A DNA stretch of 64,000 nt from Takakia lepidozioides (taxonomy: Eukaryota; Plantae; Bryophyta): NCBI GenBank assembly GCA_030704615.1, contig CM060731.1, positions 48,856,001 through 48,920,000 of the forward strand, read 5' to 3'. The notes below the pieces were generated by a model. That model was not told where the DNA came from and searched no databases. It saw nothing but the letters and a program-made list of their open reading frames with translations. The translations under genes were made by a program, and so were the position numbers. Positions 7,879 to 52,425 of this stretch are shown here, piece by piece (the stretch's first letter is position 1; the number at the start of each line of letters is the position of its first letter).

Positions 7879-8601
7879 TGTCGCGGCCCTTTGCCTTGAG
7901 GGCAGGGGGTCGGGACACATGAGGGGCTGCCCCTGTGGTGGGGGCAGCGGCAGCGATAGGTATGGGGGGCTGAAGCACCCTTGAGTGCCCAAGGCACTCA
8001 AGGAGGCGGAGGCGCTCACTAGGTGGAGCCCCGCACACCGGGTTGCGGTGGAGGTGGCTCCACAAGGGTGGTGGTAGCTTAGTGGGACTTAGTGGGGGTG
8101 GCATAGGACTCACCATGGGGTGGAGACCTCGAGGTGGGAGTCGTGGGGAGTCTTGGGACTCATCACGGTCCATTGGGGCCGCGGTGAGTGGGCCAAGACT
8201 CACCGCGACTCACCACCGGGAGTCGAGGGTTTTCGTGGTGGTTCGCCATAAAATGGCATGGCTGGTTATGAAACCCCGCGGACAGCTACAGAAGTATATA
8301 TAGGGAGTAGTAACCCCGAGAACGGTGCAAGCCCGTTGGTGACCAAAAACTAGTGAGTAAGCGAGCGAGCCGGAAAGCGACCAAAGAGTGGGGAGCTGTT
8401 CCGGACTGCCATCTACCAAAGGGAATTCTCCTAGTCCCAAATAGGTGGAAGGGTTTAGAGGGAAGCGGAAGGGGACCGTTATGTCCCGGTGAGCAGCCGA
8501 AACTCCAAGTTGGCCCGGCGGCCAGGTTGGGAGTCAGGCGCGCGCATCAAAGCGAGTAACTATGACTTGAAGGGGAGTTTACCGAACTGAGGTGTGCGTC
8601 A
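7879..8601 (+). repeat. 5' LTR (723 bp)
   Basis: TGTCGC...GCGTCA; TATATATA at about 8295; near-identical to the 3' LTR. Confidence 0.97.
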
Positions 8602-8603
8602 CT

Positions 8604-8615
8604 TGGTATCAGAGC
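8604..8615 (+). promoter_or_regulatory. Primer binding site for initiator tRNA-Met
   Basis: TGGTATCAGAGC, 2 nt after the 5' LTR. Confidence 0.95.
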
Positions 8616-8656
8616 TTAGAGTTCAGTACGCGATCGTCCTTGGGATTGGCCTCATC

Positions 8657-11600
8657 ATGGGGTCGGGCAAGCCGAAGCGAAAGCGGAACGGCCCAAAAGA
8701 TGATGATCCCGGTGAGCCCGATGGGGGCGACGTGTCACCGAGGCGGCCGTTTGAGGAAGCGATTAATGTTTCCGAAAACGAGGCCGCTCAGGAGCGGGAG
8801 GAATCCGAGGAGTCGGAGCCCGAGGAATCTTTGAGAGCTCCGACAAACCAAGAGATGCCTCCCATGCCGGCAGCCTTTTGGGAAGGGTTGTTGGCGCAGT
8901 TTGGCGGGACGTTGAAAGACGTGTTGAAGGCGGCTAATGCCACTTCCACCAAGGCAAAGTTTAAGGTGAAGCCTAAGGAACCCGGCACCTTCGAGGGCGT
9001 TCGAAACCGGAAGGCACTCAACACCTGGCTCCTGGAGCTAGAGCAGTACTTCCGGGCGGCCAAGTTGAGTGACGAGGATCGGGTGGAAGTGGCTCCCACC
9101 TATTTGAGGGGCTATGCTCAACAATGGTGGCAGAAACGCCTTCACGACCGAGGCCCAAGCCCGGAAACCTTGAACTGGAGTGAGTTCAAGGAATTGATGA
9201 AGAGACAGTTTGTGCCCCTCAACGCATCCTGGCTTGCCCGGGACAAGATGAGGAATTTGAAGCAAACAGATGACATTCGGGGGTATGTCCAGGCTTTCAA
9301 TGTGCTGTTGCTCGAAGTCGCGGACATGGCAGAACCAGAAATGGTCTTCAACTTTGTGGCGGGACTGGCCCCATGGGCTAGGCGGAAGTTGGAGGAGAAG
9401 CCACCCAAGACTTTGAACGAGGCAATTGAGAGAGCTGAATGTTTCTCGGATGTCCCTAGGGGTGAGAGACAAGGCCGTACGGAGCTGAACCACAAGAAGA
9501 CCCGGCGGGAAGGTGACTCCTCCCGACCGGAAAAGAAGTGGGATAGGCCACGCGGCGAAAATGGCACGTGGAAATCGAAGGGAGGTCCTTCACACGTCAA
9601 GGCGGCACCCGGTGCTTCGAAAGGAAAAGCGGGTGGAGCGACTTATGGCGGACAGAAGGCGACCTTTGATGGAGTGTGTTTCAATTGCGGGGAGCCCGGG
9701 CACATGGCCAAGAAGTGCACGAAGCCCCGGCAATTGAACATGACTCGGGCGACCACGGAGCTGTCGGAAGATACCATCAGTCGCTTGGTGGAAGCGGTGG
9801 TCGCCAGGACTTGCAAGGTAGGCAAATTTTCTTGTGAGTTGTATCAGGAAACTGGCGCCTTACGAAAAGGGAGTCAGTTATTGTTCGTGGATGGGATAAT
9901 ATCCGGAACTAATGTGTCGTTGTTGGTGGACACAGGAGCGTCGCACTCCTTCATGACGCCGGCGGCGGCGCGAAAGTTGGGACTCCCGACAAGTGACGTG
10001 GGGGCCTCTATTGAGGTGCGCTCTGCCAAAGGAGAACCTCAGTTGGCGACAAGGTTGGCGTTTGATGTTCCTCTTCAACTGGGGAGTTGGGAGGGACGTG
10101 AGAACTTCACTATCTGCGAGATCGATGGAGTGGATCTCATTTTGGGAATGACCTTTTTGAGCAAATCCGGAGCGGTCATAGATGGCCGCAAGAGAGTAGT
10201 CACGCTGCCATGTGGGAATGGTGGCGAGGTTTTACGAGTGTCGGAAACGCCCAAATCCGTGGGAGGGCGAATAAACCTTCTATCAGCAAAGGAGTGGGCC
10301 GTGGAGGAGACACACGAGTCCCAGTTTTTGCTTTACATTAGAGAAGTGAAAGGAGAAGGCGATGGGGAGCCGAGCCCAGATTGGATCAAGGGGATTTTGG
10401 AGAAATACCAGGATGTGATGCCGGAGGATTTACCAAGCGGCTTGCCACCGCGAAGAGGAGTTGACCACAAAATTGAGGTGATACCGGGATCGGAACCGCC
10501 TGCCAAGGCGCCCTACCGGTTGAGCCACAAAGAGTTGGTCGAGCTGAAGACTCAGCTCAAAGATCTAATGTCAAAGGGGTACATCCGGCCGAGTAAGTCA
10601 CCTTACGGAGCCCCGGTGCTATTTGCAGACAAGAAGGATGGGACGCTGCGGATGTGTGTCGATTACAGGGCTCTGAATAAGGTGACTATCAAAAACCGGT
10701 ACCCTTTGCCAAGGATCGACGACCTCTTCGATCGGTTGGCAGGAGCGAAGTATTTCAGCCGGATCGACTTGCGCTCCGGCTATCACCAAATTCGGGTGGC
10801 GGAAGGAGATGAGGAGAAGACCGCGTGCAGGACAAGGTATGGTTCATATGAGTTCTTGGTGATGCCTTTTGGGCTCACCAATGCACCAGCGACATTTAGC
10901 ACGCTGATGAACAGCCTTTTCCAGGAGTGGTTGGATGACTTTGTGATCGTGTACATCGACGACATCTTGGTGTACTCGAAAACAAAGGAGGAGCACCTGG
11001 AGCACCTCAAAAGGGTGTTCCAAAAATTGCGAGAAGGGAAGCTGTATGCCAAAGCTTCAAAGTGCGAATTCGGGGTCACAAAAGTGGAGTTCTTGGGGCA
11101 CGTGATTACACAGGATGGGATCAAAATGGATGACAGAAAGGTGAGGGCGATCTTGGACTGGGAGCCTCCGACTTCGGTCCCGGGAGTGCGATCCTTCCTA
11201 GGACTCGCCTCCTATTACCGGAAGTATGTGAGAAATTTCGCCAAGATCGCGGGGCCGCTGTCGGACCTTCTGTGTAAATCCAAAGTCTGGGTATGGAACA
11301 CATTTTGTGGCCAAGCTTTTGCTGAATTGAAGCAGCGGATGACGGAAGCTCCAGTCTTAAAAATCCCGGAGTTCGATCGTCCGTTTGAGATTCATACAGA
11401 TGCATCGGACTTCGCAATTGGGGGTGTACTTATGCAAGATGGACGTCCAGTGGCTTACGAAAGTAAGAAACTGAATGAAGTGGAGCGACGGTGGCCGACG
11501 CACGAAAAAGAGATGAAGGCGGTGGTACATTGCCTTGAACTCTGGCGCCACTATGTTGGTTCCAACCCAGTGAAGGTGTTCACGGACAATGTCACGGTGA

Positions 11601-13219
11601 AGTATTTTGCCACGCAGCCCAAGTTGTCCCCAAAACAACTTAGGTGGCAAGATACTTTGGCAGTGTTCGACGTGGATATCCAGTACAAACCGGGACGGGA
11701 CAATGTGGTGGCCGATGCTTTAAGTAGAAAGCAGCAGCTCTTGTTGGTGTACAAGGGCGAGACGGCGCTCCAAAGGAAGATCCGGAAGGCTTGCCGGAAG
11801 GATGAGCTGGCAAAGTGCGTGATGCAGAACTTGAGAATGGGGGTTAAATCGCAGTTCCACTTGCAAAACGGACTGCTCCGGTATAAGCAAAAACGTCTCT
11901 ATGTGCCAAAGGGAGGGATCAGGGATAGTCTCTTGAGAGAATGCCATGATAGCCCGCTTGCGGGCCACGGTGGAGCCAAGCGCACTGCGGCACTCTTGAA
12001 GAAAGAGTATTTCTGGCCCAAACTGAGGGAGGAGGCAGAGGAGTATGTAAAGACATGCACCACATGCCAACAAAACCGGAGCGAGTATAAAAAGCAAGCG
12101 GGGCTGTTACAACCCTTGCCGATTCCAGAGGGGACTTGGGAAAGCGTCTCGATGGATTTCATGACTGCTATGCCGCTGTCAAAAGGATTCGATGCAATCA
12201 TGGTGGTGGTAGATAGGTTCAGTAAAATGGCCCATTTCATCCCCACCAAGGAGACGGCAACTGCGCAGGAGACAGGGCGACTTTACTTCGCCCACGTCTT
12301 AAAGCATCATGGAGTCCCGAAGGATATTGTCTCGGACCGCGACCCAAAGTTTACGAGTAAATTCTGGAGAGCACTTTGGAAGAAGATGGGGACGAGGCTG
12401 AAGATGAGCACCGCCTTCCGACCTACGACGGACGGCCAAACGGAAAGAGTGAATTCCGTAGTGAAGCAATTCTTGCGGAATTACGTGTCGGCAGACCAAT
12501 CAGACTGGATGGAACACTTAGACGCGGCAGAGTTCTGTTATAATAACACAGAACACTCCGCGACGGGAGTTTCCCCTTTTGTGTTGGTCTATGGAAAAGC
12601 ACCTCTGGTGCCGACAAGTTGGGCCGCCCAGGACGTTGAGGAACCGGCAGTAGCGGCGGTACTGGAAGAACGCGAGCGTTTGTTGAAGCTCGCAAAGTAC
12701 AACATTGCCAAAGCTAGGAAACGGTATGAAAGGCAGGCGAATCGGAAGCGGAGGGAAGTGAAGTTTGAGGCAGGCACAGAGGTCTGGTTGAACATCAAGA
12801 ATTTTCGACTACCTCCGGAAATGAGTCCGAAGTTCGTACCTCCGTATGCGGGTCCCTTTCGCATTCGGAGGGTTATGAATGAGGATGTGTATGAATTGGA
12901 GCTGCCAGCAAACAGCAAGGTGCACCCAGTATTCCATGTCTCCCTTTTGAAGCCTTACTTCAAAGATGAAGCACGTCCGAATCGGCAGCAAGTGTTGCGT
13001 CCGCCACCTATGCTGTTGGATCATGAAAATGAACCCGAGTACGAGGTGGAGGCAATACTTAAGTCGAGGAGGTTCAAGAACCGAGAAACGGAGTATCTCG
13101 TCAAATGGAAGGGCTATCATCTTGTGGAGGCATCTTGGGTGCGTGCCTCAGAAATGGGAAACGCATCCGAGGCAGTTGCAGCGTTCGAAGGGCGACCTCA
13201 AAAGCGGAAGAAGCGTTGA
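8657..13219 (+). CDS. Gag-Pol polyprotein (gag, CCHC, protease, RT, RNase H, integrase, chromodomain)
   Basis: [14 protein letters not shown]; LVDTGASH; YIDDIL; TDASD; integrase H-H-C-C then SMDF/SDRD/GQTER; GPF module; [19 protein letters not shown]. First in-frame ATG after the PBS is at 8657. Confidence 0.97.
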
Positions 13220-14854: not shown

Positions 14855-16728
14855 ATTTCTTTCTAAGTTGGAAGCAGTGCGCCTCAAGTCCCAGGAGCTA
14901 TCTAGGGCAATTGCTTTCGCCAACTCTCAGAGAGAAAAATCCCTGCTTAAATGCCTGCATCTTTGTCAGCAACTCATCGAGAACAAAGACAAGGGCCCTT
15001 GCACCATGATGAACTATATGATTGCCAAAGATTAGTTTTAGACAAGAAAAGGAAAATGCCTTGAGATTAAAAGCAGGGGTGAACTGGTCTCTTAAGGGAG
15101 AAAAGATGTCTCATTATTTCTTTGTCAAGGCCAAGCAAAGAAGGATGGCCTCCTCCATTGCATCCCTCAATACTCCAGATGGGACTCCTTGCTCCTCCCA
15201 AAAGAAATGGCGGGCATTGCATCTATGATAAGGAGAAAGAAAGCCTGGATGCTCCCCTCACTGATATAGAGTTGGGGGAAGCCTTGCAATCCCTCAAAGC
15301 AGGAAAAATGCCAAGGCTGGATGGATTGCCTATAGAACTCTTTAGAGCTCTCTGGTCCTCTATGTTGGATGACTTTGTAGCCATGGCAAAGGACATCCTC
15401 GCTAAAGGTATAATGCCTTCCCAGATCTCGGAAGGTCTTATAACTTTAATCTTTAAGAAGGGAGATAGGAATGACTATCGGCCCATCACTTTGCTCAATA
15501 CCACATACAAAATAATTGCCAAAGCTCTGGCAATGAGACTCCAGCCCATTCTCTCCCGGATAATCAGACCGGAGCAGATTGGATTTCTCAAAAGCAGAAT
15601 GATTCTAGATAACTTGGTTCTTATCAATGAGGCCATTCATGAAGCTAAGAGATCAGAGCAGCCCTTGGCCATCCTTATGCTGGACTTTGAAAAGGCCTTC
15701 GACAATATAGATTGGAATTTCTTGCACAAAGTTATGGTTAAGATGGGCCTGCCAGATTCTTTCTCTAGATGCGTGAAGTTACTTCTAAGCTCAGCTTCAA
15801 GTAAAGTAACAATTAATGGCACCATCTCAGGAGCCTTTGTCCTCTACAGATCGGTAAGGCAAGGTTGCCCATTGGCACCATACCTCTTTCTAATAGCTGC
15901 TAATGCTCTTGGGCACTACCTAGCTACCAGGCAGGATATAGAAGGTTTGAAATCTGCGCATGGCCCTTCTATCAAGTTGTCTATGTATGCAGACGAGACT
16001 GGAGCTCTTGCTTAACAATGAAGATGTCTCCAACATCGCTAGAGCTTGGCAAGCCTTGCATCAGTTCTGCTCTGCTTCGGGATTGAAAGTGAACTGGAAC
16101 AAATCGGTGGGACTCCTCACGGAGACTCTTCCAAATGCTTCTAGGCAACACTGCCCGTCTTGGGGACATGACCTGGGTCCCAAATGGCTATCGCCAGGTA
16201 TGTCACATACTATTTTAGGCCTTCAGGTGGGCATTGGATTCACAGAGGAACAAAGGTTTGACCCAATCCTTCAGAAGCTTCGTAATAAGCTAGCCTTTTG
16301 GAGCTCGGCCATGCTCTCTTTGGCTGGAAGAGCTCTGGTCTTGAATCAAGTCTTTTTAGCCTCTATATGGTTTTCCGCATCTGTGTGGTCTCCAGGATCA
16401 AAGCTAGTAGACAAAATCAAAGCTATAATGCGTAATTTCTTATATGGTGCCACACCTCAATCCCCCACCAGAAGAGCTTTGGTCTCATGGACGCAACTAT
16501 GCAGACCCAAAAAAGAAGGCGGGCTAGGGCTAATTGATCCATCATGGCAAATTACCGCTCTCCTAGCCAAATGGATTCCCAGAACCTTGCAGCTAGGAAC
16601 CAGTCTTTGGTGCAACTTGGTAAGATTGCATTTAGTGAACTCCACGCCTCGGAATTCCAGCTCCTGGGCTCCTTCATTAAGATGGCTAGTCCACGGATCA
16701 GCCAAATCTGTTAGAATTGAGCAAGAAC
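14855..16728 (+). mobile_element. LINE ORF2 segment 2: reverse transcriptase (frameshifted)
   Basis: YRPITLLN, LDFEKAFD, VRQGCPLAPYLF, YADET, LSLAGRALVL and PKKEGGLG motifs. Confidence 0.93.
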
Positions 16729-18735
16729 CACTACAGGAAAAAGGGGGGGGGGGGGGGGGGTTTCAATGCTGCGGCGTCGTAAAACAGTCTTTTTCGGGCG
16801 GGAAAAAAACCAAATTTGCGACGTCCGGGTGTCGCAAGCCCGTCGCCAAAAAAACGTCGCAAATTTGTGACCAATGGGGGTCGCAAATATGCGAAACCGC
16901 GATTTGCGACGCCCGGGCGTTGAAAAAAAAAAAAAAAAAAAAAAAACCTATTCTACAATGCAGAATTAGCACCGTCCGGGGGTCGCAAAGTGCGACGCCC
17001 GGACGTCACAATTTAAGGGGGTACATTTGAATTTAGGCGGGAAAATTTGAATTTGAAATTTGAATTTCAAAAACTTGTTGACCATTGACTCCTGTTCTAT
17101 CTAATGGCGATATGTTCATTGTTCTACATATATCATGCAACGCAAACTTGAACCTAAGACCTCCACGTTATAACATTTCTAAGTCACTACAAACTAACCA
17201 ACACACCTACGCTACATCTATGTATCACAAAAGCAATCTAAATTTATATACTAGGGCTTCGCGTTGCTCTGCATTACTAGCGACGAATTCTGAGAACTAT
17301 GTTCAATTTTCACAAAAAAATGTGGGTCATCTCCATTGTTTGATTCATTTACCTCTATCTTTGCCCAAGAAGTGAGGAGGAGTTGAACCCCCTTTTCTCT
17401 ATTTTTTCCCTTCGTTTAGCATTTGTTTTGTCTAGATCAGAGTCGATTGTTTATATCTTTTCTCATCATTTAATTTCTCATTTTAGTTTTATTGTCTTGA
17501 TTAAAAATGATTGTCTTGATAAAAAATGATCGTCTCGATAAAAAATTGTCTTTGATATTGATATTTGTTTTCAATGTTTTAAGTTTACAGTTTGTTTAAA
17601 GATTTACCAAACCACGGTTTTGTATTTTCTACGTGTAAAACATGTCTTGGCAGGATCTCTTCATTACTGAATGCTTAAACTTCTCACATTCATGTTCATT
17701 TCCAAGTATAGTGCTTATAATTCTCCTCAAGTGAAGCCGCGGTTTGGCTCTTCAGACAGCTTCAAACTGGGTAATTGGAAGTCGAGATTCATAAGTGTCA
17801 AGTTTACAAGGGACTATTTATTGTTGATTACATCCTAGAGGCTTCCATGTTTTGAGAGGGAGGGGCTCAAAAAGAGTTTTCTCAAGGGACTACAACTCTC
17901 TAGAGCCTTTTTGCCTAAATACACTGCAAGAACATCTTTTAATTAATGCGAACTTCTCACATTCCAGAATTTCTTTGAATGCCATTGCCACCATAAGTCT
18001 GAAAAGTCTGCGAAAAGATCACACCCAGGAGGGCCCATACATCCAATAATATAATACTCTCCTCTAGTGTGTGTCTCGATCTTTGAAAACCAGTTGTGTT
18101 CATGAGAAGATATGATGTGAAGAGGCAAAGGTGGAACCCCTAAGCCAGACAATGATCAGCACAAAGTGCCAAGATATACATTGCTTGCTCACCCATCTGC
18201 CCCTGCTTCCGCCATACATATCAATCTATATCTGGTTAAGGAAGTCAACATGTCATTGGATGAAAACTAGGGCATATTACTTCACAACCCAGACTCCAGC
18301 TTTTTGTCATGGTCCCCTCCTCCACCCAGACCACTGAATCTGATGGTCTTGACAATATTCAATCAATTCATCCCCACTTGTAAAGGACCATTGTACACTT
18401 AGAATGATTGCATTCATCAACAGATAAAAAATCTTAAGCCTTTGTACAAAGTAGCTAGAGGGTTTGATCAGAGGCGCGTAATCCTATATCTCAACCTCCC
18501 TTCCTCAATAGAGACAAAGGAACTAAAGTATGATGCCAAAATGTACCTACAAGGCAAAACGACTTGTGGCCGAGATGAGAGTGACCAGTGACACCACTGT
18601 AGCCCCATAATATTCCTTGATCAATTGCTGGAGTGCCATTGACCTCTGTGTCCTGTTGCCCACCACGGATCCCTGAACCATGTGGCATCCCCAATGTCCA
18701 TATCCAATTTTAAATACACTTGTGTAGCATTTTCC

Positions 18736-20808
18736 TCAAGAGCTTTGACAACATAGTTTACATGACCATTCATTCAGCCATCTGCACATTGCCATGGATT
18801 CTGCAGGCACAAGCAAAGCCTTCCACACCACACCATCTGGATTGATTGGCATTTTATTAATTAGGTCCATTGCCTCATCCAGTTGTCCCACACGTCCAAG
18901 AAGGTCCACCATGCAGCCAAAGTGCTTTATTGTCGGAGTGACACCATGATGTTCACTCATGGAATCGAAGTAGCATCTTCCTTCATTCAGTAGGTCAGTG
19001 TGGCTGCAGGCAGAGAGAACACATATAAAGGTGATACTGTCCGACTTCAAGCCTTTCTTTTGCATTCCTTCAAATAGTTGTAGGACCTCCCTATGACAAC
19101 CATGTTGGGCATATCCTGCGATCATCGCATTCCACGACACCACATTTCATTCAGCCATATTGTCAAATATTCCCTTTGCATCCTCATTGCAGTCACATTT
19201 CGCATACAAGTGAACCAGGGCAATGTCCAGAATGACATTTGGTACAATTCCAACTTTGATGATGTCACCATGAACCTCTTTGCCCTTTTCCAGGGCTGCC
19301 AGGCTTGCACACGCATTGCAAATGCACACAAACGTGATGTGGTCAGGCTTCACCCCTTCCCCCAGGCCTCCATCCCGCACCCCTGCTGTGCATATCCTAC
19401 AAGCATGGCGTTCCATGACACCAAATCTCGTTCAACCATATTGTTGAACACTCCCTCCACATCCTCGATGTTCCCACATTTGGCATACATGTCTACGAGG
19501 GTATTGTTCATAATCACATCTGGTACAATTCCAGCTTTGGCGATGCAACCATGCACCTCTTTGCCCTTTTCCAGGGCTGCCAGGCTTGCACACGCATTGC
19601 AAACACAAACAAATCTGATGTGGTTGGGCTTCACCCCTTCCCCATCATTTGCTCATAGGTCTCCAAGGCCTCCATCCCGCGCCCCTGCTATGCATATCTT
19701 GCAAGCATGGCGTTCCATGATACCACGTCTCGTTCGGCCATATTGTTGAACACTCCCTCCGCATCCTCCATGCTCCAACATCTGGCATACATGTCAACGA
19801 TGGTATTGTTCAAAATCACATCTGGTACAATTCCAGCTTTGGCAATGCAACCATGCACCTCTTTGCCCTTTTCCAGGGCTGCCAGGCTTGCACACAAACG
19901 TTATGTGGTCGGGCTTCACCCCTTCCCCCATCATTTGCTAATAGGTCTCCAAAGCCTCCATCTTGCGCCCCTACTGTGCATAACCTGCAAGCATTGCGTT
20001 CCATGACACCACGTGTTGAACACTCCTTTCGCATCCTCAATGCTCCCACATTTGGCATATATGTCCACCAGAGCAGTGTTTAGGATGACATCTGGTACAA
20101 TTGCAGATTTGATGATGTCACCATGGATCTCTTTGCCCTTTTCCAGGGCTGCCAGGCTCGCACACGCATTGCAAACGCATACAAACGTTATGTGGTCAGG
20201 CTTCACCCCTTCCCCCATCATTTGCTCATAGGTCTCCAAAGCCTCTATCCCTCCATCCCACGCCCCTGCTGTGCATACCCTGTAAGCATCGCACTCCACG
20301 ACACCACATCTCGTTCAGCCATAGTATTGAACACTCTCTTGGCATCCAAAGATTGAAAGATTGTAGATATTGGGAAGTAGCTAGTTTTGTTTTGCAGTAG
20401 CCTGAAGTCTGCTTTTGGATGTATATCTTGGACTCGGTGTTCAGTGATGTTTTGGTGCCTCTTGTCCTGCATTTTGACTCCAGCCGAAGATGAAAACTGA
20501 GCGTAGACATAGCCAGGACTAGACTTGAAGGAACAAAATCAGAGTTTAGATTAAATTGGAAAGCACTACTAAAGGACCCAGTAAGTAGACCACTTCTTGC
20601 ATGCTTGAGCTCCAGCAACTGGATCAACCGCACGATCTGTAGTTGCCGCTCCGCTGAGCACTTGCTCTTATATAAATTTAGGCAACTTCGATTCCTTTGC
20701 ATGATCTCTGTCACATTGGCGAGAGATGTCAGGGGTCCCTGAGAATGGATGCCGTCTACATTTGGCATACATGTCCACCAAGGCAGTGTTCATAATGACA
20801 TCTGGTAA
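18736..20808 (-). pseudogene. Fragmented PLS-class PPR gene cargo (P/L/S, P2-L2-S2, E1)
   Basis: Repeated VVSWNAM, HITFVCVCNACASL and NTALVDMYAKCG motifs, ending HFGCMVDLLGR..PDGVVWKALL. Many frameshifts and internal duplications. Confidence 0.9.
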
Positions 20809-20824
20809 TCTGACAGGCATTCAC

Positions 20825-22810
20825 CTTTTTGCCTCGGTTGTCCAACCATTGACTGGGGTCAGAAAAGTATTCATTCCACAGCTTCTCCTCGTCTGAGTTA
20901 CCTATTTCTGGATACTTTCCTGTTGTCACATTGACAGTATAATGTCAAAGTCACTCCAAACTAGATTCACTCAACCAGCTAATTTGCAGAATTCAACATG
21001 GAAATGTAGGGCCGGTTCTGATAAGAGGGAAAAACAGGGTGAAATGTGTTGAAGAAGGTGCCTTCATTAGCAGTGCCTGATTTTGTCAATTGTGGCGCTA
21101 CTGCTGCGGCTTCCAGTTGATCATCTACCCATGCAAGTTTCTTGTAGCTATTGATCCACATGGAATCAAAAGGTAATCTTGTGCTTGAAATATGGCCTTC
21201 TTGGATGAATCTGGACCCACACTCTATCCTTGCTCCTTCAGCTATCCATGCCTCTGCACAAATCATACATACATCCTTGCCTTGCTGCTAACAGCTGACA
21301 ATGATAGCCTAGATTTGTTAGGAAACACCCAACTCAACTTATCACACCAGTTCCTATGCTCAATTGCATCTGCTACTCTTTGTAATCCAACAGACATTCA
21401 CCTTTTTGCCTCGGTTGTCCCACCATTGACGGGGGTCAGAAAAATATTCATTCCACAACTTCTCTTTAGGAAACACCCAGCTCAACTTATCACATCAGTT
21501 CCTATGCTCAATTGCATCTGCTACTCTGTAATCCAACAGGCATTCACCTTTTTGCCTCGGTTGTCCCACCATTGACGAGGGTCAGAAAAGTATTCATTCC
21601 ACAGCTTCTCCTCATCTCTGTCACCTGTTTTTCGATACATTCCTGTTGTCACATTGGCAGTATCATGTCAAAGCACTCCAAACTAGATTCACTCAACCAG
21701 CTAAGTTGCAGAATTCAACATGGAAATTTAGGGCAGATCTGATAAGAGGGGAAAACAGGGTAAATGTGTTGAAGAATGCCTTGATTTGCAGTGCCTGATT
21801 TTATCAATTGTGCCGTTGCTGCCGAGGCTTCCAGTTGAGCATCTACCCATGTAGGTTTCTTGTAGCTATCCTTCCACAGGAAATCATAGGTAATTGGAGC
21901 TTGAAATCTGGCCCTCTTGGATGAATCTAGACTCACACTCTATCCCTGCTCCTTCAGCTATCCTTGCCTCTACACAAATCATGCGTACATCCTTGCCTTG
22001 CTGCTATAATCTAACAATGACAGCCTAGAATTGTTCCAGCAAACACCCCAACCCTACTTTGACTCCAAACTATCAAAGATTCACTCAACCAGCTAACTTG
22101 CAGAATTCAACATAGAAATTTAGGGCAGATTCTGATAAGAGGGGAAAACAGGGTGAAATGTGTTGAAGAATGTCTTGATTAGCAGTGCCTGATTTTATCA
22201 ATTGTGTCGCTGCTGCTGCGGCTTCCAGTTGAGCATCTACCCATGCAAGTTTCTTGTAGCTATCTTTCCACAGGGAATCATAGGTAATTGGAGCTTGAAA
22301 TCCGGCCCTCTTGGATAAATCTGGACCCACACTCTATCCCTGCAGCTATCCATGCCTCTGCACAAATCATGCATACATCCTTGCCTTGCTGCTAGCAGAC
22401 GCATCCAACAAGCATTCACATTTTTGCCTCGATTGCTAAGACCAAGTTGAATCTCCCAAGAACCTTGTAAACGCGCTCAAGGACGCGGAAAATCTGAATT
22501 GCATCTGCTTCTCTCTGTAGTCCAACAGGCATTCACCTTTTTGTCTCCATTATCCCACCAATGACTGGGGTCGGAAAAGCGTTCATTCCAAAGCTTCTCC
22601 TCATCTTTCTCCTCATCTCTGTTATCTGTTTTTGGATACTTTCCTGCTGCCACAACGGCAGTAACTTGTCAGGGCCAAGTCTGATGAGAGGGCAAAACAG
22701 GCTGAAATAGGTCGAAGAAGAAGGTGCCCTCACCACATTGTCCTTGACCTTGTCTCATGACCCATGGAGGATTTGGCCACCATCAACCCAGAAGGACCTC
22801 TGTGTGTACT
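20825..22810 (-). pseudogene. Tandem array of intron-split OSB-type PDF motif exons
   Basis: Exon A (EEKLWNEYFSDPSQWWDNRGKK, GT donor) ends at 22537, 21548, 21402 and 20825. Exon B (AG acceptor, IHPRGPDFK.KIT.DS.W.DSYKKP.WVD.QLE) starts at 22320, 21926 and 21210. Spliced in phase 0 they give the WWDNR..K..P..PDFKHK....LW...P.WV consensus. Confidence 0.8.
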
Positions 22811-23491
22811 AAGAGCCCACATTTGCAGGTGTACTAAGAGCCCACATTTGCAGGATGGACAAACATCTTCACATCATACATTAAGAAAAGCCACACCTTG
22901 CGATTGCGGTTGTCCCACCATCGTGCAAATTCCAGCTCTAATGCGGTGTACTCAAAATCTGCAAATGTCTCCCTCCGCGCTCAAGCATCCCGTGCTGCAA
23001 GACGTCTCTTCCGGTTATTTTTGGGCATTTCGGGCAGGTTTCAAAGAAATTGACGACGACGATGACGTGTCTACGATGACATGGTGACGAAACATGGTGA
23101 TGATGACGTGGCACTATGGCACCCTATTCCTGCTCTACGCTAAACTAGCTTCCGACCTTCGGTCGTCGCTAGAATATACATATAAAGATTTCCTTCAAGT
23201 TCCTTCAAGTTCCTTCTAAGGGGGTCTCTCTTGTGACGCCGGGGAGTTGCAACCTCCACACTGTGGTGATGCTGTTGCGACGCCCTGACGTCGCAAAGGC
23301 GCTGGGGCGCCCTTAGTGACGCTTTTGCGACGCCAAGGCGTCGCAACGCCTAAATTTATTTTTTTATTTTTATTTTAATTTTTTTTGGATTTCCGACGCC
23401 GGGGCGTTGCAAGAAAAAAAATCCGCCGCAGCGAGGGCCATCTTTCCCCCTTCATGCAACTTTACCTGGGCGTCGTAATGGTGTCGCAGTG

Positions 23492-25392
23492 ACCATCCAC
23501 CTTCTAGCCATTCACCTTTCAAAGGTGAGTTAAACAAGATAGTCTCTTAGACTTCTAAACCTTTGGCCTTCAAGACTCTTAGTCTTCTAGATATGTTTAA
23601 TTACTTCCAACAAAATCGAACTGTGCTGGAAGCGACGCCTGGAAGTCCATATTTAGCGCCTGGCTGTCAATCAGACCGCATATGTTCCGGAGAAGAGCGC
23701 GTTGCTTTGAGGAGGCAATTCGTCAGCCTCTCTTTGGAAACATAAATCTGGACTATGCTCCCATGATCGAAATGGGCAACGTGGGAAAGCAAAGGGCTCA
23801 CGCACATCGCCAACAATTGGGAGATGGCGAGTTCCTGCCACCGGCTCTGCTGTCCTCTCTAGTTTCGGCCAATTCCATACGAAACGGGTGGGACCACATC
23901 AAACAGGGAGTGACATATGTTTTGCCCTTGCTCAATGGCAGAGATACCTCTCACAACAGCCCATGGCCATGCTGGTTTGGCAACAATGAGGGGAGTGCCT
24001 ACCTTGCCCTACTAGCTATTGCCCATTCAAATACGCATTGGCAAGGCTTGGAATTTGCTACAGACGCTGCGGGGAGTATCCAGTACATAGGTCAAGGACA
24101 GATGCATAAGGTCTCAGCGTTTAGAATTAGAGTTTTTGAGACTCTATCAGGGACTCCAGACCCCAAGCCGCCCCTAGGAGACGAATCAAGTTGGGCTCGG
24201 CAAATGCCACTGTCCTGGTTCCTGCGCTTTCCACTTACCAGGCTGTAGTTTGATCCAGGAGAGTGGACCTGGATGGATGCCAAAAAAACGCCGCTCCTAG
24301 GACATATAGTCAGGATGGGCTATAGAATGCAACTGGGAAATGCCAACTGCACAAACAAGTGGAACAAAAAATGGAATCTCAACTTGCAAATTCCAGCCTG
24401 GAAAGGAGTTTGGAAAGATATCTGGGCCAAACACCGCTCGACAAAAATTAACGCGTTCCTCTGGAAAATCGCCAATCAAATCCTTCCTATGGCTGTCAGT
24501 TTGCAGGATCGGGATCCCACATGCATGGTGTGTAGCTGTGGCATGGCAGAAACCATGGAGCATTGTCTCTTCACTTGTCACTTTCTTTCAAGAATTTGGC
24601 ATCTCGTGGCGGATTTACTCTGCTTGGAACCCCCTCCCTCCCTTGTCAGCACCTCTTCTCATGCTTAATCTAAATAGAGATTCGGCTTGGAACAGCTGCC
24701 AGTTATGGGCTTGTCTTCGTGCACTTACAATTTGGGCCATTTGGAAGGGAAGATGAAACCACCCTAGTATCAGATCGATTCTAAGTTTTCGGATCTGATG
24801 ACTGAAGGGTGTAAAGCGTTGGTCTCTTTGCAAGTAGCTATCAACAGGTGCAACGAAAGAAGGAACAGGGAGCTTTTCGAGGATTTCGACACCACCTGGG
24901 CAAAAGACGGCCTCATCTGCGCAAGGCTCTCTGACTCCAGAGTTGAATGGCGTGATCAACTCCCCAGCGCTTGGCAAATCGCCAACTGAGTCTGACGCCC
25001 CGATATTAATTGGAAACACAGCAAGGCTCACAGCTCCAAATCCAAAATGCATCCAGATTTTGGTCGCTAGTTCTTGTATGGGTCCTTTACAGGGTCTAAC
25101 TTAATCGTTCCCTCCTCTCTGCCTCTTTATGATCTTGCCTGCAGTCTCCTTATCTTTTAAAGCGCTTCTTGGTTCTCTTATGAGTCTGCCAGGTAGTTAG
25201 CTTTCTATTTCTGCCTCGTTTTCGGCATCAGCCCCGCTCCCCCCCCCCCCGCCAGACACTGGGTGTTCCCCATGAGATAGGCCTTTATGGCCTTCTTGGA
25301 GGTTATTTTTTCCTCCATTTGTCTTATTTTCCCCTTATTTAATAAAACTCATCCGGGCACCAAACCCTGTTTGGGGGGAAAAACAAAGAAAA
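23492..25392 (+). mobile_element. LINE ORF2 segment 3: C-terminal zf-RVT region, 3' UTR and A-rich tail
   Basis: KINAFLWKIANQILP..CMVCSCGMAETMEHCLFTC and IWAIWKGR. AATAAA at about 25341 and an A-rich end at about 25379-25392. Confidence 0.85.
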
Positions 25393-26399: not shown

Positions 26400-27480
26400 G
26401 GCAGTCGCTTCCCGGATGGTGAGATCTACAAGGAATCTAAAAACGTGGAATGGCTTAGCAGGCGCCGCTTGGAACCTGTCTAAAAGCTTATTTGTGTGCA
26501 ACGGATCTGGCACGATGGATCCAAAGCGAAATTTCAGCCTAGCAAGCCGATTTGATTGTGGCTGGTTGTCAATTTGATATCCCTGTCAAACTCGGGGGGT
26601 GACGTCGCCATGGAGGGGTGTGATGAGTTCTCGCCATCAATCTGGCGGTTTGAGCTGCCCAGGCACAGTGGGGATGGTGACGAGCTGCTAGTGCAGAAGA
26701 AAGACCGTTTCTGCCCAAGTGCTGGCGAACTGACCGTGGATAGCTGCCGCTTGTTGGGGTCTTCTTGCGACATCTGCACAAAGTTTTGCCCAAGCCTTCC
26801 TCCCTTCAATCTGCAAGTCCCAGAATACTCTAGAAAGCAAGGTAGATAAAGTGCAGGTGGTACCCGAGGGTCCAGGCACATCTAACTTTCCAAATGTTCC
26901 ACAGTGTAGAGTTGCGAAGGCAATCGTAGACTGGGCAGTTTGAAGCCTTGGTTTTTGAATTTGAGTCGTAGTTGAGTAGCAAATGTACAACTGAGAAGTC
27001 TTGGGTATCCCAATGTCTATAAAAATCTTTAACGATAGGCCAGACTTTCCTGGGGGTAAGGCAACAGAATAGGCAATGTTCCAAGGTTTCCAACTGCCCA
27101 TAGGAGCAACAAGAGCAAAGCAAGGCTTCCTGGAATTGTAACCACTCTCCCACCTTAAGGACTCTGTTGGCTATTTGCCATAGAAAGGCGGACATCTTGG
27201 CTAGCCTTGTTTTTTCCCAGATATATGTCCAGATTGATTTCCAGTTTTCCTCCACAAACCCGTAAGATTGCCATTTCGAGTTCCATTTGGCACAGAGGGG
27301 GCTGGGAGATGTCAGAGCCTTGTATGTTGTTCTGGTGGTGTACGCGAAGAAGGGAGTCGGAGATCTAGAAACGGGCTTTTCCGTTCAGTATCCACCCTGT
27401 GACCATGTCTCTATCCCTACAAAGTACAGTCCCTCTCTCCCTTCCTAATCTCCCCCATACTCCCATCAGAATCTGCTGCT
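26400..27480 (-). mobile_element. 5'-truncated LINE 3' fragment (zf-RVT)
   Basis: KMSAFLWQIANRVLKVGEWL..CSCC..ETLEHCLFCC..TLWNIWKVRC, homologous to 24273-25000 and 40340-40970. Confidence 0.85.
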
Positions 27481-32943: not shown

Positions 32944-34479
32944 ATAACTTTTCTAGGGCTTAAACTGCCCGATACCCGGACTGAAAACCACGATTTTTGT
33001 TTTTTTGGGGTATCTTGTTCGCATAACGTGAGGAAACCCCACGCCTATAGGGTGACATGTTTATCGTGTATAGGTGTTACTTGTTTCTTAAGTGATGCTA
33101 TGAGGGCCTATGTGAGCAGTTAAAAAAAGTTTCTCAATTTTAGTTTCGATGGAGAAAAGGCATCTAGGGAATATCCTTAATATTCGCTTGTGCTCACCAC
33201 TACCCAACCTCGTGTGGGGCAACCTCCTTCTACAACTATCTCCAACTGCTTGATGAGGTCGGGCCGTCGGCCCGAGAGGGTGTACAATAATAGGATAATA
33301 CATATTCATAGTGTTCTCCGTATATAAAGGAGAAGAATGCTCTCCCGCTCTCCTCCCACACCTCTTACTACTTACTTGCTAAGTTAGTACCTACTTTAGT
33401 GGGCTCTGCACATAAACATGAACCATAGCTATGTTAATTAATAGAACAACTGAGCTGTTAATTAAGCCCTAAGATAGAGGTAGACTATGACGTAAGGACA
33501 TTTCATACAATGTTTAACTTAGATGTCTGTCTCTTCTGTTTGGATTCCTCATGAAATGTCCATGGTGACAAGTGTTACATTGGGAAGTACTTAAGAACCA
33601 AGGACCCAATGTTAGTGGCAAGGTGGGACCCACAAGATGGGTGGGCCTTGCCTACCATAAATTGGGTTGATATGAGTTTAGCATAAAGTATGGGTTGAGC
33701 ACAATCCACTCTTCTGCTGGGATAAATATGTTTTCAAATGGAAATTCTAGCCATAGGCAGACATAGCTTGGTGTTGCTTCGTCAATAGGGTCGTTACGGT
33801 CTATGATGAATGTATTTCTATTTAAGTCGAAAGAAAACCAGTTCACAATACATACTTGGAATTTTCTTTTAAATAAACTATAAAATAGGAGGCCCTAAGA
33901 AACTTTATTTGGAATTATTAGTTCAAAAAGATATAGAGGATCGCGATGTGAGCTCTTGGAGCTCCAGCTTTTGTGGTGAGAGAGACGTTCAACGGCCTCT
34001 TCGTCTCTCTCGTCTCACTGATCACAAGGAAGGATTCCTCCTACTAATTGTGGATGCTTTTGGATATTGTTGTGCTAAGCCTCTTTGCTTCCTTTGCGTT
34101 TTGCCACGCAACAAATCCTAGATCGACGACCCATTCCTCCCCAGAACTTTCATTAAACTTGGCCCTGGAATTCATCTCCCCTTCATGATCCCATCCCGCC
34201 CAGTGAGTCCCCTTTAATTGATCCCATGCAGGCCAACGCCTCTATACCATAAACCATTGGCCCCCAAACCTTCCAGCCACCATGCAATTTCTGTGGATTG
34301 ATACCCCAGCCACCATTTAACTTGGTAGGTTCTTGGCACCCCTCCCCCTCTATCCTCACCGAGCTCACTGCCATCTCCCAAACCCTTCTAGCTCTTCCTT
34401 ATAGTGCGAAGGACAATGATAATCATTATATTTATCAATAGTTTGGTCTCGGAACACCATAATTAATAGTATCATTTTT

Positions 34480-34874
34480 TTCATTTGTGTTTGAAGATAC
34501 GCCAAAAGTCTCCAAAACTTTGGATCGTCCAAATTTTCATGTGGATCCCCGAACCTGTTCCTCTCAACATATTTCGCCACAGACGGAGCTTCCAACAATG
34601 CAAGGAGGTATTTCTCAAGCTTTCTAAGCAAACATTTGTCCTTTGCAAATGTTTCGAAGGGTGGAGGGTAAATGCATGACCCCATGGGATTGATGACACA
34701 CTTGTATGGGCTATCATCAACAAGGAGAGTGTTTTCCTCATCATATCGACCTTTGTATTTGTCCCACACTCTCCTAAGAGGCTTCAGAAAAAAAGGGCGA
34801 GAAGATTCTGTAGAACTTTTTGCTGCGTTGAAGTTTCTGGGAGCAATATTGGGTGGACAAACAATGCAATCGTC
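34480..34874 (-). pseudogene. Isolated exon of an FCP1/NIF-like (HAD) phosphatase domain
   Basis: CAG acceptor, then DDC..PFFLKPLRRVW..YDEENTLLVDDSPYKCVINP..IYPPPF. The N-terminal DxDxT motif was not found. Confidence 0.7.
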
Positions 34875-35039
34875 CTGCGACATAACAAAAATAGGCTGTC
34901 GAAAAGTGGAGACGCAAAGCTGCGGAGTGTTTGACATGCTTCCAATTAATATCACGCTCAAATTCGGGTGAGGCGATGGAAGGTGGCACGGAGGTTTCGG
35001 CAGCGATCAAGGGGTTGTATGTTGTAGTATAGGCGATCC

Positions 35040-35340: not shown

Positions 35341-36075
35341 CTCAGACCTGAGGGTGGCTGGTGGAAGCACCTGGTTAATGGGTACATCCTCAATAGCTCT
35401 CCTCTCGACACTACAAGAGATGAGCGTTTTTAGGACTACGGCTTTGGCGGAGTCATAAAAACTGCACTAGGTAGATGACTACAGAGCGCTAAAATGCATT
35501 GCAGTCATAGTTTTATGACTTTGTAGTAATGGATATCACTACATGACTCCGGAAAGTTAGGGAGCATTGGTCAAACATTGTTGACCATGATAACATGGAT
35601 GGTTTATATGACTAGTGTGATATGTTTGACTACACGTGGACAACGTTTCATGGAATCTTATGACTCCATGACTGAAGATGGTTTCATAGCTCTATTTATA
35701 CGACTACATCACTACGCGTGTCATTTTGAAGGCACATATAATGCAAATAAGGTTGCCCATTAGGTTTAAAAAAGTTAAAAAGTTGCTAATAAGGTTGCCC
35801 ATTAGGGTAATCGTGAACAGAAAGGAGGGCTGGGACTTGGCGTTTTTTTTGTCTCCTACGCCACACCACATAGCCGAGGGATGGAACGCGATGATAGCAG
35901 GATATGCAGGGGTGTGGGATGGAGGCGTTGAGCAAATGATGCACGAAGGAGAAGAGGAGGAGGAGAGGAGATGAGGAGAAGCCAGCTTGTCGTTCTTGGG
36001 AGAGTCAGCTTGGTCTTAGCAGGCGTGTTTCAATCTTTGACTACTCAGCTACGCCGTAGTGGTTCAATCTCACAG

Positions 36076-36797
36076 ACCAATCCGACATTACCTGACTACA
36101 GACACAAGCAACACACACAAGAGGTCCTTTTAGGTTGATGGTCGGTCAAATCCTCCATGGGTCAGGATAGGTCAAGGACAATGTGGTAGGGCACCTTCTT
36201 CTTCAACCTATTTCAGCCCGTGTTGCCCTCTCATCAGACTCGGCCGCAAGATGCATATTGAATTCTGTAAGTTAGGTCGTTGGGTAGATCTGTGGTGGTT
36301 TGGAGTGACTTTGGCAAGTTACTACCACTGTGGCAACAGGGAAGTATCCAAAAACATATAATAGAGGTGAGGAGAAGCTTTGGGGTGAACACTTTCCGAC
36401 CCCAGTCAATGGTGGGACAATGGAGACAAAAAGGCGAATGCCTGTTGGACTACAGAGAGAAGCAGATGCATTTCAGATTGTGATAAGTAGGGTCGGGGTG
36501 TTTTGGGGAAGAACTCCATATCAGTATGGTTGGGGTGTTTGCTGGTAGAATTCTAGGCTGTCAGAGGCATGGATAGCTGAAGGAGCAGGGATAGAGTGTG
36601 GGTCCATATTCATCCAAGAGGGCTGGATTTCAAGCTCCACATTACCTATGATTCCCTGTGGAAGGATAGCTACAAGAAACCTACATGGGTAGATGGTCAA
36701 CTGGAAGCGGCAGCAGCAACGGCACAATTGATAAGGTCAGGTACTTCTACTGAAGGCACCTCCTTCAGCACATTTCACCCTGTTTTTTCCTCTTATC
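36076..36797 (+). pseudogene. OSB-type PDF motif exons in CACTA 2 (first cluster)
   Basis: 36076: TNPTLPDYRHK..TQEVL.VDGRSNPPWV (frameshifted). Exon A ..DPSQWWDNGDKK ends at 36433. Exon B IHPRGLDFKLHITYDSLWKDSYKKPTWVDGQLE starts at 36608. Splice sites are partly mutated. Confidence 0.78.
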
Positions 36798-37669
36798 CGT
36801 TTCTTGCGAGCTGTCTTCTCTTATCTGTTTGTCTGCCCAGTCTTCAGTGAATGCGTCAAGGCTTTGTGTTTTGGCTTCTTCCTCGCTTTTGTCACCCTCT
36901 CCCATGAATATCTCTGGTTGGCGCTCAAACCCTGTTGAGCTGTAGATGTTGTCCATGCCAATGCATTCTTCTTCACCAAATCCATGTTTTTGCCCTAAAT
37001 CATTGATGTCTTGGCTGGATTTCTGCAGAATAGGCATCCCATCCCCTATTTCGGCCTTCTTTGCACTTTCCCGTGTCAACATGTTGATGTGGGGTGTTGT
37101 TGTAGTCTTATTGGAGTGTGATCACTTATATGGTATATCTCGTCCAACTCATCCAGTGCCTCCACTCATTATGAGTGAACTAACATGACACTTGTGCTAT
37201 TGGTTGCATCATGTACTCCGTGCTTGGCAGTGGGTAAGCTTCTCCTCCTTCCACGTACTCGTTGATCACTCCAAAAGGTACTCCATACATCTTCCCTTGA
37301 GGTCCTACCCCTTTTTTTGCTTCTGTGATTGTTTCAGCTTTGCTGAAAGTTTGCCAAGACCCATGTTGGGTTAGTGTGTGACGACTGTGTCTCATGTTAT
37401 TACAGATTTTGCACAGTGTTCTTTGTTTGGGCCTTCTGATGCCTTGTCTGATGGACTCAAGTTTGTCAAAATCAATTTGTATCCACTCTGCTTCCATGTT
37501 GTTGCTGTCAGCAGCTTGTTCTTCTGCCAGCTGAAGCCCGACAGGGCCTGGGTCTTCCCTTATGCCCGCATCAGAGCATTTCCCAATGTCTGTAGTTGCT
37601 TCATCCTTCCTCAACTCCGCCCTCTCTTTGGCAGGTTGCGCACCTTCACCTCCACCTCCACCTTCACCT

Positions 37670-37882
37670 CCATGGTGACATCATCAAAGCTGGAATTGTA
37701 CCAGATGTCATTCTGAACACTGCCCTGGTGGACATGTATGCGAAATGTGGGTGCATTAAGGATGCGAAGGGAGTTTTCAACACTATGGCTGAACGAGATG
37801 TGGTGTCATGGAACGCGATGCTTGCAGGGTATGCAGAGCAGGGACATGGTATGGAGACCTATGATCAAATGATGGGGGAAGG
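37670..37882 (+). pseudogene. PLS-PPR fragment in CACTA 2
   Basis: HGDIIKAGIVPDVILNTALVDMYAKCG..DVVSWNAMLAGYA, closely related to 19150-20340. Confidence 0.88.
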
Positions 37883-38612
37883 GGGCACCTTCTTCAATAG
37901 CTCACAGCGGCTACAAGTGGGTAGATGGTCAACTGGAAACAGCAGCGGCAACAGCACAATTCATAAAACAAGGCGCTGCTAATGAAGGTACATTCTTCAA
38001 CATATTTCACCTTGTTTTCCCTGCTATCAGAGTCGTTCCTAAATTTTAATGTTGAATTCTGCAAGTTAGCTCGTTGGTGGATCTATGGTAGTTTTGGAGT
38101 GATTTTGATATGTTACTGCCAATGTGGTCGACAGGAAAGTATTAATAAATAGATAACAGAGACTCGAGGAGAAGCTCTAGGATGAATACGTTCCCGACCT
38201 CAGTCAATGGTGGAACAATCGAGGCAAAAAGTGAATGTCTGTTGGAAGCAGACGCAAGTCAGCATAGGAACTAGTGTGATAAGTAGGGTTGGGGTGTTTG
38301 CTCAAGCAATTCTAGGCTGTCATTGTCAGCTGCTAGCAGCAAGGCGAGGATGTATGCATGATTTGTGCAGGGGCATGGATAGCTGAAGGAGCAGGATAGA
38401 TGTGTGGGTCCAGATTCATCCAAGAGGGCCGGATTTCAAGCTCCATATTACCTATGATTCCATGTGGAAGGATAGGTACAAGAAACCTGCATGGGTAGAT
38501 GGTCAACTGGAAGCCGCAGCAGCAGCGGCACAATTGATCAAATCAGGCACTGTTAATCAAGGCACCTTCTTCAACACATTTCACCCTGTTTTTCCCTCTT
38601 ATCAAATCGGCC
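37883..38612 (+). pseudogene. OSB-type PDF motif exons in CACTA 2 (second cluster)
   Basis: Exon A ..SQWWNNRGKK at about 38165-38230. Exon B CAG|IHPRGPDFKLHITYDSMWKDRYKKPAWVDGQLE starts at 38414. Confidence 0.8.
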
Positions 38613-51955: not shown

Positions 51956-52425
51956 CACTATAGGAAAAGGGGGGGGGGGGGGGGGGGGTTCGACGCCGCA
52001 GCCACGCCGCGGCGTCGTAAAACAGCCCTTTTCGGGCAGGGGGGAAGAACCAAATTTGCGACGCCCGGACGTCGCCAAAAAAACGTCGCAAATTTGTGAC
52101 CAATGCTACGCAGAATTAGCACCGTCCGGGGGTCACAATGTGCGACGCCCGGACGTCACAATTTAAGGGGGTGCATTTGAATTTAGGCGGGAAAAAATAA
52201 ATTTGAAATTTGAATTTCAAAAATTTGTTGACCATTGACTCCGGCGTTGACCATTGACTTCGGTTTTGTCTAATGGCGATATGTTCATTGTTCTACATAT
52301 ATCATGCAATGCATACTTGAACCTAAGACCTCCACATTATAACATTTCTAAGACACTACAAACTAACCAACACACCTACGCTACATCTATGTATCATTAA
52401 AGCAATCTAAATATATATATACACA
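51956..52425 (+). mobile_element. Truncated left end of the CACTA 1 family
   Basis: CACTATAGGAAAA plus poly-G and about 450 bp collinear with 16729-17250. No right end found. Confidence 0.85.

Follow-up and report, generated by a model that had tools for sequence, protein, structure and literature searches.

Tandemly duplicated PDF-motif cassettes in Takakia lepidozioides as probable remains of the leader of a PDF-PPR gene

A tandem array of two alternating segments, A and B, occupies positions 20825-22810, on the minus strand, of a 64,000-nucleotide stretch of the Takakia lepidozioides genome (assembly GCA_030704615.1, contig CM060731.1, positions 48,856,001 to 48,920,000; hereafter the window). 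Its closest described counterparts are PDF-PPR genes and plant Organellar Single-stranded DNA Binding (OSB) proteins. PDF-PPR genes encode a PLS-class organellar pentatricopeptide repeat (PPR) protein with at least one OSB-type PDF motif before the repeats. In the OSB proteins themselves the PDF motif spans about 50 residues (Zaegel et al. 2006, as summarised in PMC4166229 and PMC6963530), and that of AtOSB1 binds single-stranded DNA (ssDNA; PMC6963530, PMC4166229). Pack-CACTA transposons (Catoni et al. 2019, PMC6379663; also PMC8903248) form a further point of comparison, a first-pass annotation of the window having read the array as a multi-PDF OSB gene that a CACTA element enclosing the interval took up, introns included, and amplified.

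Compared with the PDF-PPR genes of Diphasiastrum, Ceratodon and Riccia, the array likewise places PDF cassettes (one to three in the known genes) before a PLS-PPR array. Its A exons resemble those of the known genes in size and share their phases, one known gene has the same GTGAAT donor, and the core FSDPSQWWDNR recurs unchanged in many Diphasiastrum copies. Those genes are intact and annotated and their cassettes are old and diverged, whereas the cassettes in the window are near-identical recent duplicates with frameshifted B segments, one truncated A, a rearranged junction to the PPR part and a decayed PPR array. Likeness to the OSB PDF motif is seen in the conceptual translations, LW..F..P..WWDNR..K followed by PDFKHK..LW...P.WV, and in a phase-0 intron whose position matches that in an OSB4 gene of the grass Dichanthelium; the window copies differ in being broken, in a second half that is nearer the PPR-linked subtype, and in lacking the accompanying OB-fold (SSB) domain of OSB proteins. 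An element 12.6 kb away shares with Pack-CACTA transposons the CACTA terminal inverted repeats (TIRs), a 3-bp target-site duplication (TSD), subterminal repeats, scrambled host fragments and retained introns, whereas the array lies outside it and is without such defining ends. The interval is accordingly interpreted, with a probability of roughly three in four, as a non-functional remnant of a PDF-PPR gene's 5' leader, in which PDF cassettes were duplicated in place and not inside a transposon.

Anatomy of the array and identity of its segments

Three-frame translation of 20750-22830 on the minus strand, with alignment of the copies, resolves the region into the two alternating segments. Segment A has the core ...EEKLWNEYFSDP.QWWDNRGKK and is present four times in the interval. 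Segment B, reading IHPRGPDFK.. and then ITYDSLWKDSYKK.AWVD.QLE.., is present three times, starting at 22320, 21926 and 21210. Full A copies have CAG| upstream and all A copies have AAG|GTGAAT downstream, while the B pieces begin directly after CAG| or TAG|. Self-BLAST of the unit gives E-values of 1e-42 to 1e-147, far beyond chance, and the repeat is also recovered by Tandem Repeats Finder (TRF) together with a repeat search. The count of four A and three B copies given by the first-pass annotation thus stands; what it overlooked is that all three B copies are frameshifted and that one A is partial. The base unit is about 577 bp long (A, intron, B, intron), and two partial duplications make the spacing of the copies uneven. 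One, of 394 bp, copied a B without its A; the other, a tandem duplication of 146 bp (TRF period 146, 2.0 copies, 94% matches), yielded a third A copy that comprises the 3' part of the exon only.

Pfam scans of the A and B open reading frames (ORFs) return nothing, the PDF motif being one without a Pfam family. A profile of the B piece over 53 positions, leaving out the first 11 columns (IHPRGPDFK..), was searched against 1.84 billion representatives and gives three matches, two of them of low complexity and the third a 1371-aa PPR protein from a transcript assembly (P0002) with three N-terminal PDF motifs. In 3/3 of these motifs A falls on the first half and B on the second, the halves abutting within one to three residues. 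The 300-residue leader of this protein matches proteins named OSB1, OSB2, OSB3 and OSB4 by NCBI, several of them with an SSB OB-fold, at E-values down to 1e-46; few full-length relatives are found in the search with residues 1-300.

For scoring within the window, an OSB-only hidden Markov model (HMM) was built from 37 PDF motifs out of 20 OSB or SSB-domain proteins and a second HMM from 13 PPR-linked PDF motifs, and the A and B exons were scored separately. Applied to 2977 stop-to-stop pieces of the window, the OSB-only HMM gives its four best scores to the four A copies (E 7.5e-8 to 1.6e-5, positions 2-30), and two intact B paralogues elsewhere in the window, at E 7e-5 and 2e-3, cover the other half (positions 29-60). 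Within the interval, the frameshifted B pieces align where expected on the OSB HMM but are weak one by one, and with the PPR-linked HMM they are significant. Taken with the complementary arrangement of A and B, these matches confirm the PDF identity proposed by the first-pass annotation: judged by profile similarity, A and B are complementary halves of an OSB-type PDF motif.

Individual copies, followed here along the minus strand from the upstream side, vary in completeness. Just outside the interval, at 22895-22956, lies A0, probably a fifth, divergent A-type exon. It ends ...WWDNRNRK and has TTTGCAG| as phase-1 acceptor and, as phase-0 donor, AAG|GTGTGG in a context identical to that of a Riccia PDF-PPR gene; its match to the OSB-PDF HMM is weak (E 0.036, HMM positions 19-27). 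B0, at about 22673-22810, is a degenerate B second half plus tail, reading ...PPWV...GEGTFFF... and containing a stop codon; alone it is not significant by HMM, and it is 89% identical to 36113-36245 in the CACTA-borne copy described below. Between A0 and B0 a perfect 25-bp tandem duplication is found at 22804-22854 (TRF period 25, 2.0 copies, 100%). A4, at 22537-22643, is a 107-nt A exon of the WWDNGDKK variant with a 12-nt in-frame insertion (OSB-PDF HMM E 1.6e-5, positions 2-29). B3, at 22124-22320, has lost one base between PDFK and ITYDSLW (a -1 frameshift) when aligned to the intact paralogues and also has a 2-nt tail deletion, its second piece scoring E 4.1e-5 at positions 34-60 of the PPR-linked PDF HMM. 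B2, at 21732-21926, is the 394-bp partial-unit duplicate without an A of its own; it has the same -1 frameshift, with upstream stop codons, and scores E 4.2e-6 with the PPR-linked HMM.

Farther downstream, A3, at 21548-21642, is a full 95-nt A exon (OSB-PDF HMM E 7.5e-8, positions 4-29). A2, at about 21402-21466, comprises the 3' two-thirds of an A exon (HMM E 1.2e-7) and belongs to the 146-bp duplication at 21318-21610, which covers the exon end and the intron start. B1, at 21010-21210, contains a +1 frameshift, an extra T after KHKITF, and gives HMM pieces at positions 29-40 and 42-60. A1, at 20825-20919, is again a full A exon, of the WLDNR variant (HMM E 7.9e-8).

Intron phases in intact genes and decay of the copies

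Window A exons are entered at CAG|GA.. in phase 1 and left at AAG|GT in phase 0, and the B pieces are entered at CAG|ATT in phase 0. The same division is found in annotated genes. In the PDF-PPR gene R1sor_025308 of Riccia sorocarpa (P0062) an 84-nt exon ends ...WWDNRLGK|GTGTGG and the next exon runs from RDPDYPDFKHK into the PPR array. A and B are on separate exons in the PDF-PPR-DYW gene KC19_1G285400 of Ceratodon purpureus (P0153), and O6H91_11G109000 of Diphasiastrum complanatum (P0166) has three cassettes in the order A, B, A, B, A, B, then a PPR exon. Every A of the Diphasiastrum gene runs from phase 1 to 0, the internal B exons run from 0 to 1, one of them ending G|GTAAGT, and the last B runs from 0 to 2; one of its A donors reads AAG|GTGAAT as in the window. 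Both PDF motifs of Dichanthelium OSB4 (P0047) are split at the same place and with the same phases. The split is not universal: the PDF motif of OSB1 from Momordica (P0068) is undivided, and PDF-PPR genes of two Adiantum species (P0077, P0079) are intronless, judged by gene span.

Across the Dichanthelium OSB4, Ceratodon, Diphasiastrum and Riccia genes the A exon always runs from phase 1 to phase 0, and on this comparative evidence the A|B intron is real and old. Consistent with this matching exon structure, both joinings put forward by the first-pass annotation are genuine gene architecture: A to B in phase 0 in all four genes, and B back to A in phase 1 in the three-PDF Diphasiastrum gene and in Dichanthelium OSB4. 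The intron position and phase common to OSB and PDF-PPR genes suggest that the module moved between the two families as an exon cassette.

Within the window, the phase-1 GTAAGT after B is retained only at 38613, in the CACTA-borne copy; the three interval B copies read CTACAT or CTAAAT where that paralogue reads GTAAGT. With the intact paralogues at 36608-36799 and 38414-38612 as reference, the PDFK and ITYDSLW parts of all three interval B copies are in different frames through a 1-nt indel (+1 in B1, -1 in B2 and B3), and B2 and B3 show the further 2-nt tail deletion. Splicing does not yield a continuous ORF, given the B indels, the incomplete A2, the stop codons and the dispersal of the PPR array over three frames. 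Identity among the array units is 90-96% in intron 1 and tail and 86-94% in exon B, and this conservation of non-coding sequence at or above the level of coding sequence points to recent DNA-level duplicates without selection. Retention of introns in the copies likewise indicates copying at the DNA level, a point on which the first-pass annotation is upheld. Its tandem-repeat coding unit is not borne out, the array being the decayed product of recent segmental duplication and not a preserved multi-PDF unit. Frameshifted B pieces, a truncated A, a lost B donor and a broken PPR array leave no protein-coding role for the array, which as far as its sequence can tell is dead as a protein-coding unit.

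A reading that takes the array for a functioning multi-PDF leader in front of an expressed PPR gene of this type, its defects spliced out or due to sequencing errors, can draw on canonical AG/GT sites at the A exons and on the 5' side of B and on intact three-cassette genes in a lycophyte, and is hardly credible given three independent indels within B coding cores, the truncated A, B 3' ends without a canonical donor, the stop codons, and a PPR array that could be read through only with three or more changes of frame and across an interruption of about 410 bp.

The parent gene and the transposon question

A decayed array of PLS-class PPR motifs, including the beginning of an E motif, follows directly downstream of the cassettes on the same strand (18790-20815); it is distributed over three reading frames with stops and recognised by Pfam PPR matches. 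In tblastn with the window's own 785-aa PPR ORF the array is matched in frames -2, -1, -3 and -2, up to query residue 658. The first PPR motif is split by a foreign stretch of about 410 bp (20350-20760, minus strand) that replaces around four codons between ...DMYAKC and DAKRVF... and shows no obvious TIR or TSD. The B pieces score 17-30 bits with the PPR-linked HMM as against 4-20 bits with the OSB HMM, with differences of 10-16 bits, whereas A scores equally with both. Among the best 120 relatives of the other PPR ORF in the window, 36 have one to three N-terminal PDF motifs; they belong to Diphasiastrum, Calypogeia, Ceratodon, Sphagnum and Adiantum, and the core FSDPSQWWDNR is found in many of them. 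Identity is no more than 52-55% for the top PPR matches, from Diphasiastrum complanatum, and 68% at the nucleotide level for the Riccia gene. When 16 OSB proteins were compared with the window by tblastn in a search for the OB-fold (PF00436), all matches at E<0.05 fell in the PDF parts and the OB-fold side gave only E>=0.05; Pfam scans of the neighbouring ORFs found no SSB match. The contiguous PPR array, the closer fit of B to PPR-linked PDF motifs and the lack of an OB-fold match in the window make a PDF-PPR gene the more likely parent, rather than an OSB gene.

A CACTA element does exist in the window. At 35409-39478, 12.6 kb from the array and in the opposite (plus) orientation, a 4,070-bp element of Pack-CACTA type is bounded by 29-nt TIRs (26/29 identity) and a CGA/CGA TSD and has ATGACT-type subterminal repeats; it is non-autonomous, as no transposase is present. 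Its interior is a scrambled set of PPR fragments (35870-35950 and 37669-37884) and A/B cassettes with 77-89% nucleotide identity to the array. Its A exons lie at 36340-36433 and 38135-38231, a partial B at about 37900-38020, and its two B exons at 36608-36799 and 38414-38612, the latter followed by GTAAGT; both of these B reading frames are intact. A stretch of 872 bp within the element (36797-37669) has no match elsewhere in the window.

No comparable boundaries enclose the array. Inverted repeats and CACTA-type TIR/TSD pairs around the interval are no more frequent than chance, two pairs being seen where about 2.6 are expected, without subterminal similarity. Of the two, 11983/44602 is a chance-level pair, as is 1617/33313, which has a TIR of 9 bp only and no subterminal similarity. 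The sequence CACTACAA at 17185, considered as a CACTA end, is internal to a repeat in common with about 52354 that continues on both sides. Clusters of TTGCGACGYC at about 16816-16913 and 23275-23346, considered as ends of one element, lie in regions alike in that motif only. The backbone of the real element (35409-36113, 36797-37669 and 38616-39478) has no match near the array, and its TIR family is found in the window only at 35409 and 39478. The placement of the array inside a CACTA element by the first-pass annotation is therefore abandoned; the element at the separate locus is probably what prompted it.

For the origin of the array in the leader of a PDF-PPR gene, we infer the following order of events and mechanism. 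The cassette of about 577 bp would have been copied in place at the DNA level, once as a full unit and twice in part (146 bp and 394 bp), the 394-bp step probably via GTGAAT microhomology. The copies would then have decayed, every B acquiring a frameshift, one A being truncated and the B 3' donor being lost, and the downstream PPR array would have become frameshifted and interrupted. A paralogous set of the same pieces would have been picked up by the CACTA element. Occurrence of at least two A subtypes, WWDNGDKK and WWDNRGKK, together with the divergent A0/B0 pair, suggests that two or more cassettes were already present in the ancestor.

Several points weigh against this interpretation. The junction between A1 and the PPR part is unnatural: the A1 donor is followed by only about 15 nt of intron and then, on the same strand, by the middle of a PPR motif, with no B between them. 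This points to a later deletion or rearrangement, and the locus is thus a rearranged one and not simply a mutated gene. The contrast between the PPR-linked and OSB HMMs may be partly taxonomic, as the motifs behind the OSB HMM are mostly from angiosperms and those behind the PPR-linked HMM from seedless plants. Finally, the array and the CACTA-borne copy carry the same two A subtypes, which implies a common multi-unit ancestor, and the array locus may itself be a former transposon-borne copy that has lost its ends.

That alternative, which is improbable and survives best among those weighed, would make the array the internal remnant of an older Pack-CACTA of the family of 35409-39478, its termini lost to later insertions of long interspersed nuclear elements (LINEs) and others. 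It would account for cassettes of both subtypes with PPR fragments at the two loci, 77-94% identical, and for the scrambled PDF/PPR junctions at both, and the flanks are indeed rich in transposable elements, with RVT_1 at 15122-16015 and zf-RVT at 24273-24668. It would also have to explain why neither the element backbone nor a second TIR match appears, the sequence at 17185 lying inside another repeat, and why the PPR array is about 2 kb long and in gene order here, as against fragments of 80 and 216 bp in the element.

Less probable still is the capture of a multi-PDF OSB gene proposed by the first-pass annotation. In its favour, the PDF motif is OSB-type, a multi-PDF OSB4 gene with the same alternating exons exists, and the window does hold a CACTA element with such pieces. 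For 20825-22810 it is largely refuted: no TIR/TSD pair encloses the interval, and an OSB donor is disfavoured by the missing OB-fold, by the score advantage of B with PPR-linked motifs, and by cassettes that at both loci adjoin PPR repeats and not OSB sequence.

Significance and other features of the window

As a dead relic the locus has no functional importance; its value is that of an anatomical record. It shows how the ssDNA-binding PDF motif is built from a two-exon cassette, with intron positions and phases common to one angiosperm OSB gene and to PDF-PPR genes from a liverwort, a moss and a lycophyte. An A-B cassette that can be duplicated or moved without breaking the frame would explain simply why the number of PDF motifs varies, and its phase symmetry makes an exon-shuffling origin of the PDF-PPR fusion plausible. 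The fusion is common in annotated seedless-plant proteomes yet absent from the searchable literature, full-text searches having returned no paper that connects the PDF motif with PPR or DYW proteins. Both candidate processes, local segmental duplication and Pack-CACTA capture, are seen in the window acting on the same sequence. A broader and speculative proposal, to which we give little weight, is that tandem duplication and Pack-CACTA capture of the phase-symmetric (1-1) cassette form a route that multiplies PDF modules (one to four per protein) and could also shift them between OSB and PPR genes, so that transposon-assisted exon shuffling would have built the PDF-PPR editing-factor family.

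Additional features of the window belong mainly to other repeats. LINE-type (non-long terminal repeat) fragments with RVT_1 or zf-RVT lie beside the PDF-PPR pseudogene at 15122-17030 (plus strand), 24273-24668 (plus) and 26830-27255 (minus). The 10-mer TTGCGACGYC forms partly palindromic clusters at 16816-16913, 23275-23346 and 52056 (seven matches against 0.11 expected), and the block 16730-17250 recurs at 51956-52419; clusters and block are probably parts of an unclassified repeat family. At 8594-13219 (plus strand) an uninterrupted 1541-aa Ty3/gypsy polyprotein ORF comprises gag, protease, reverse transcriptase, RNase H, integrase and chromodomain, possibly marking a young or active chromovirus-type long terminal repeat retrotransposon. 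An Rfam scan of the window gives no match. Two long overlapping ORFs of 435 and 558 aa at 43960-46843 (minus strand) have no Pfam match, and an ORF at 34365-34961 (minus strand) with a weak match to NIF (NLI-interacting factor-like phosphatase; E 4e-5) is possibly a host-gene exon.

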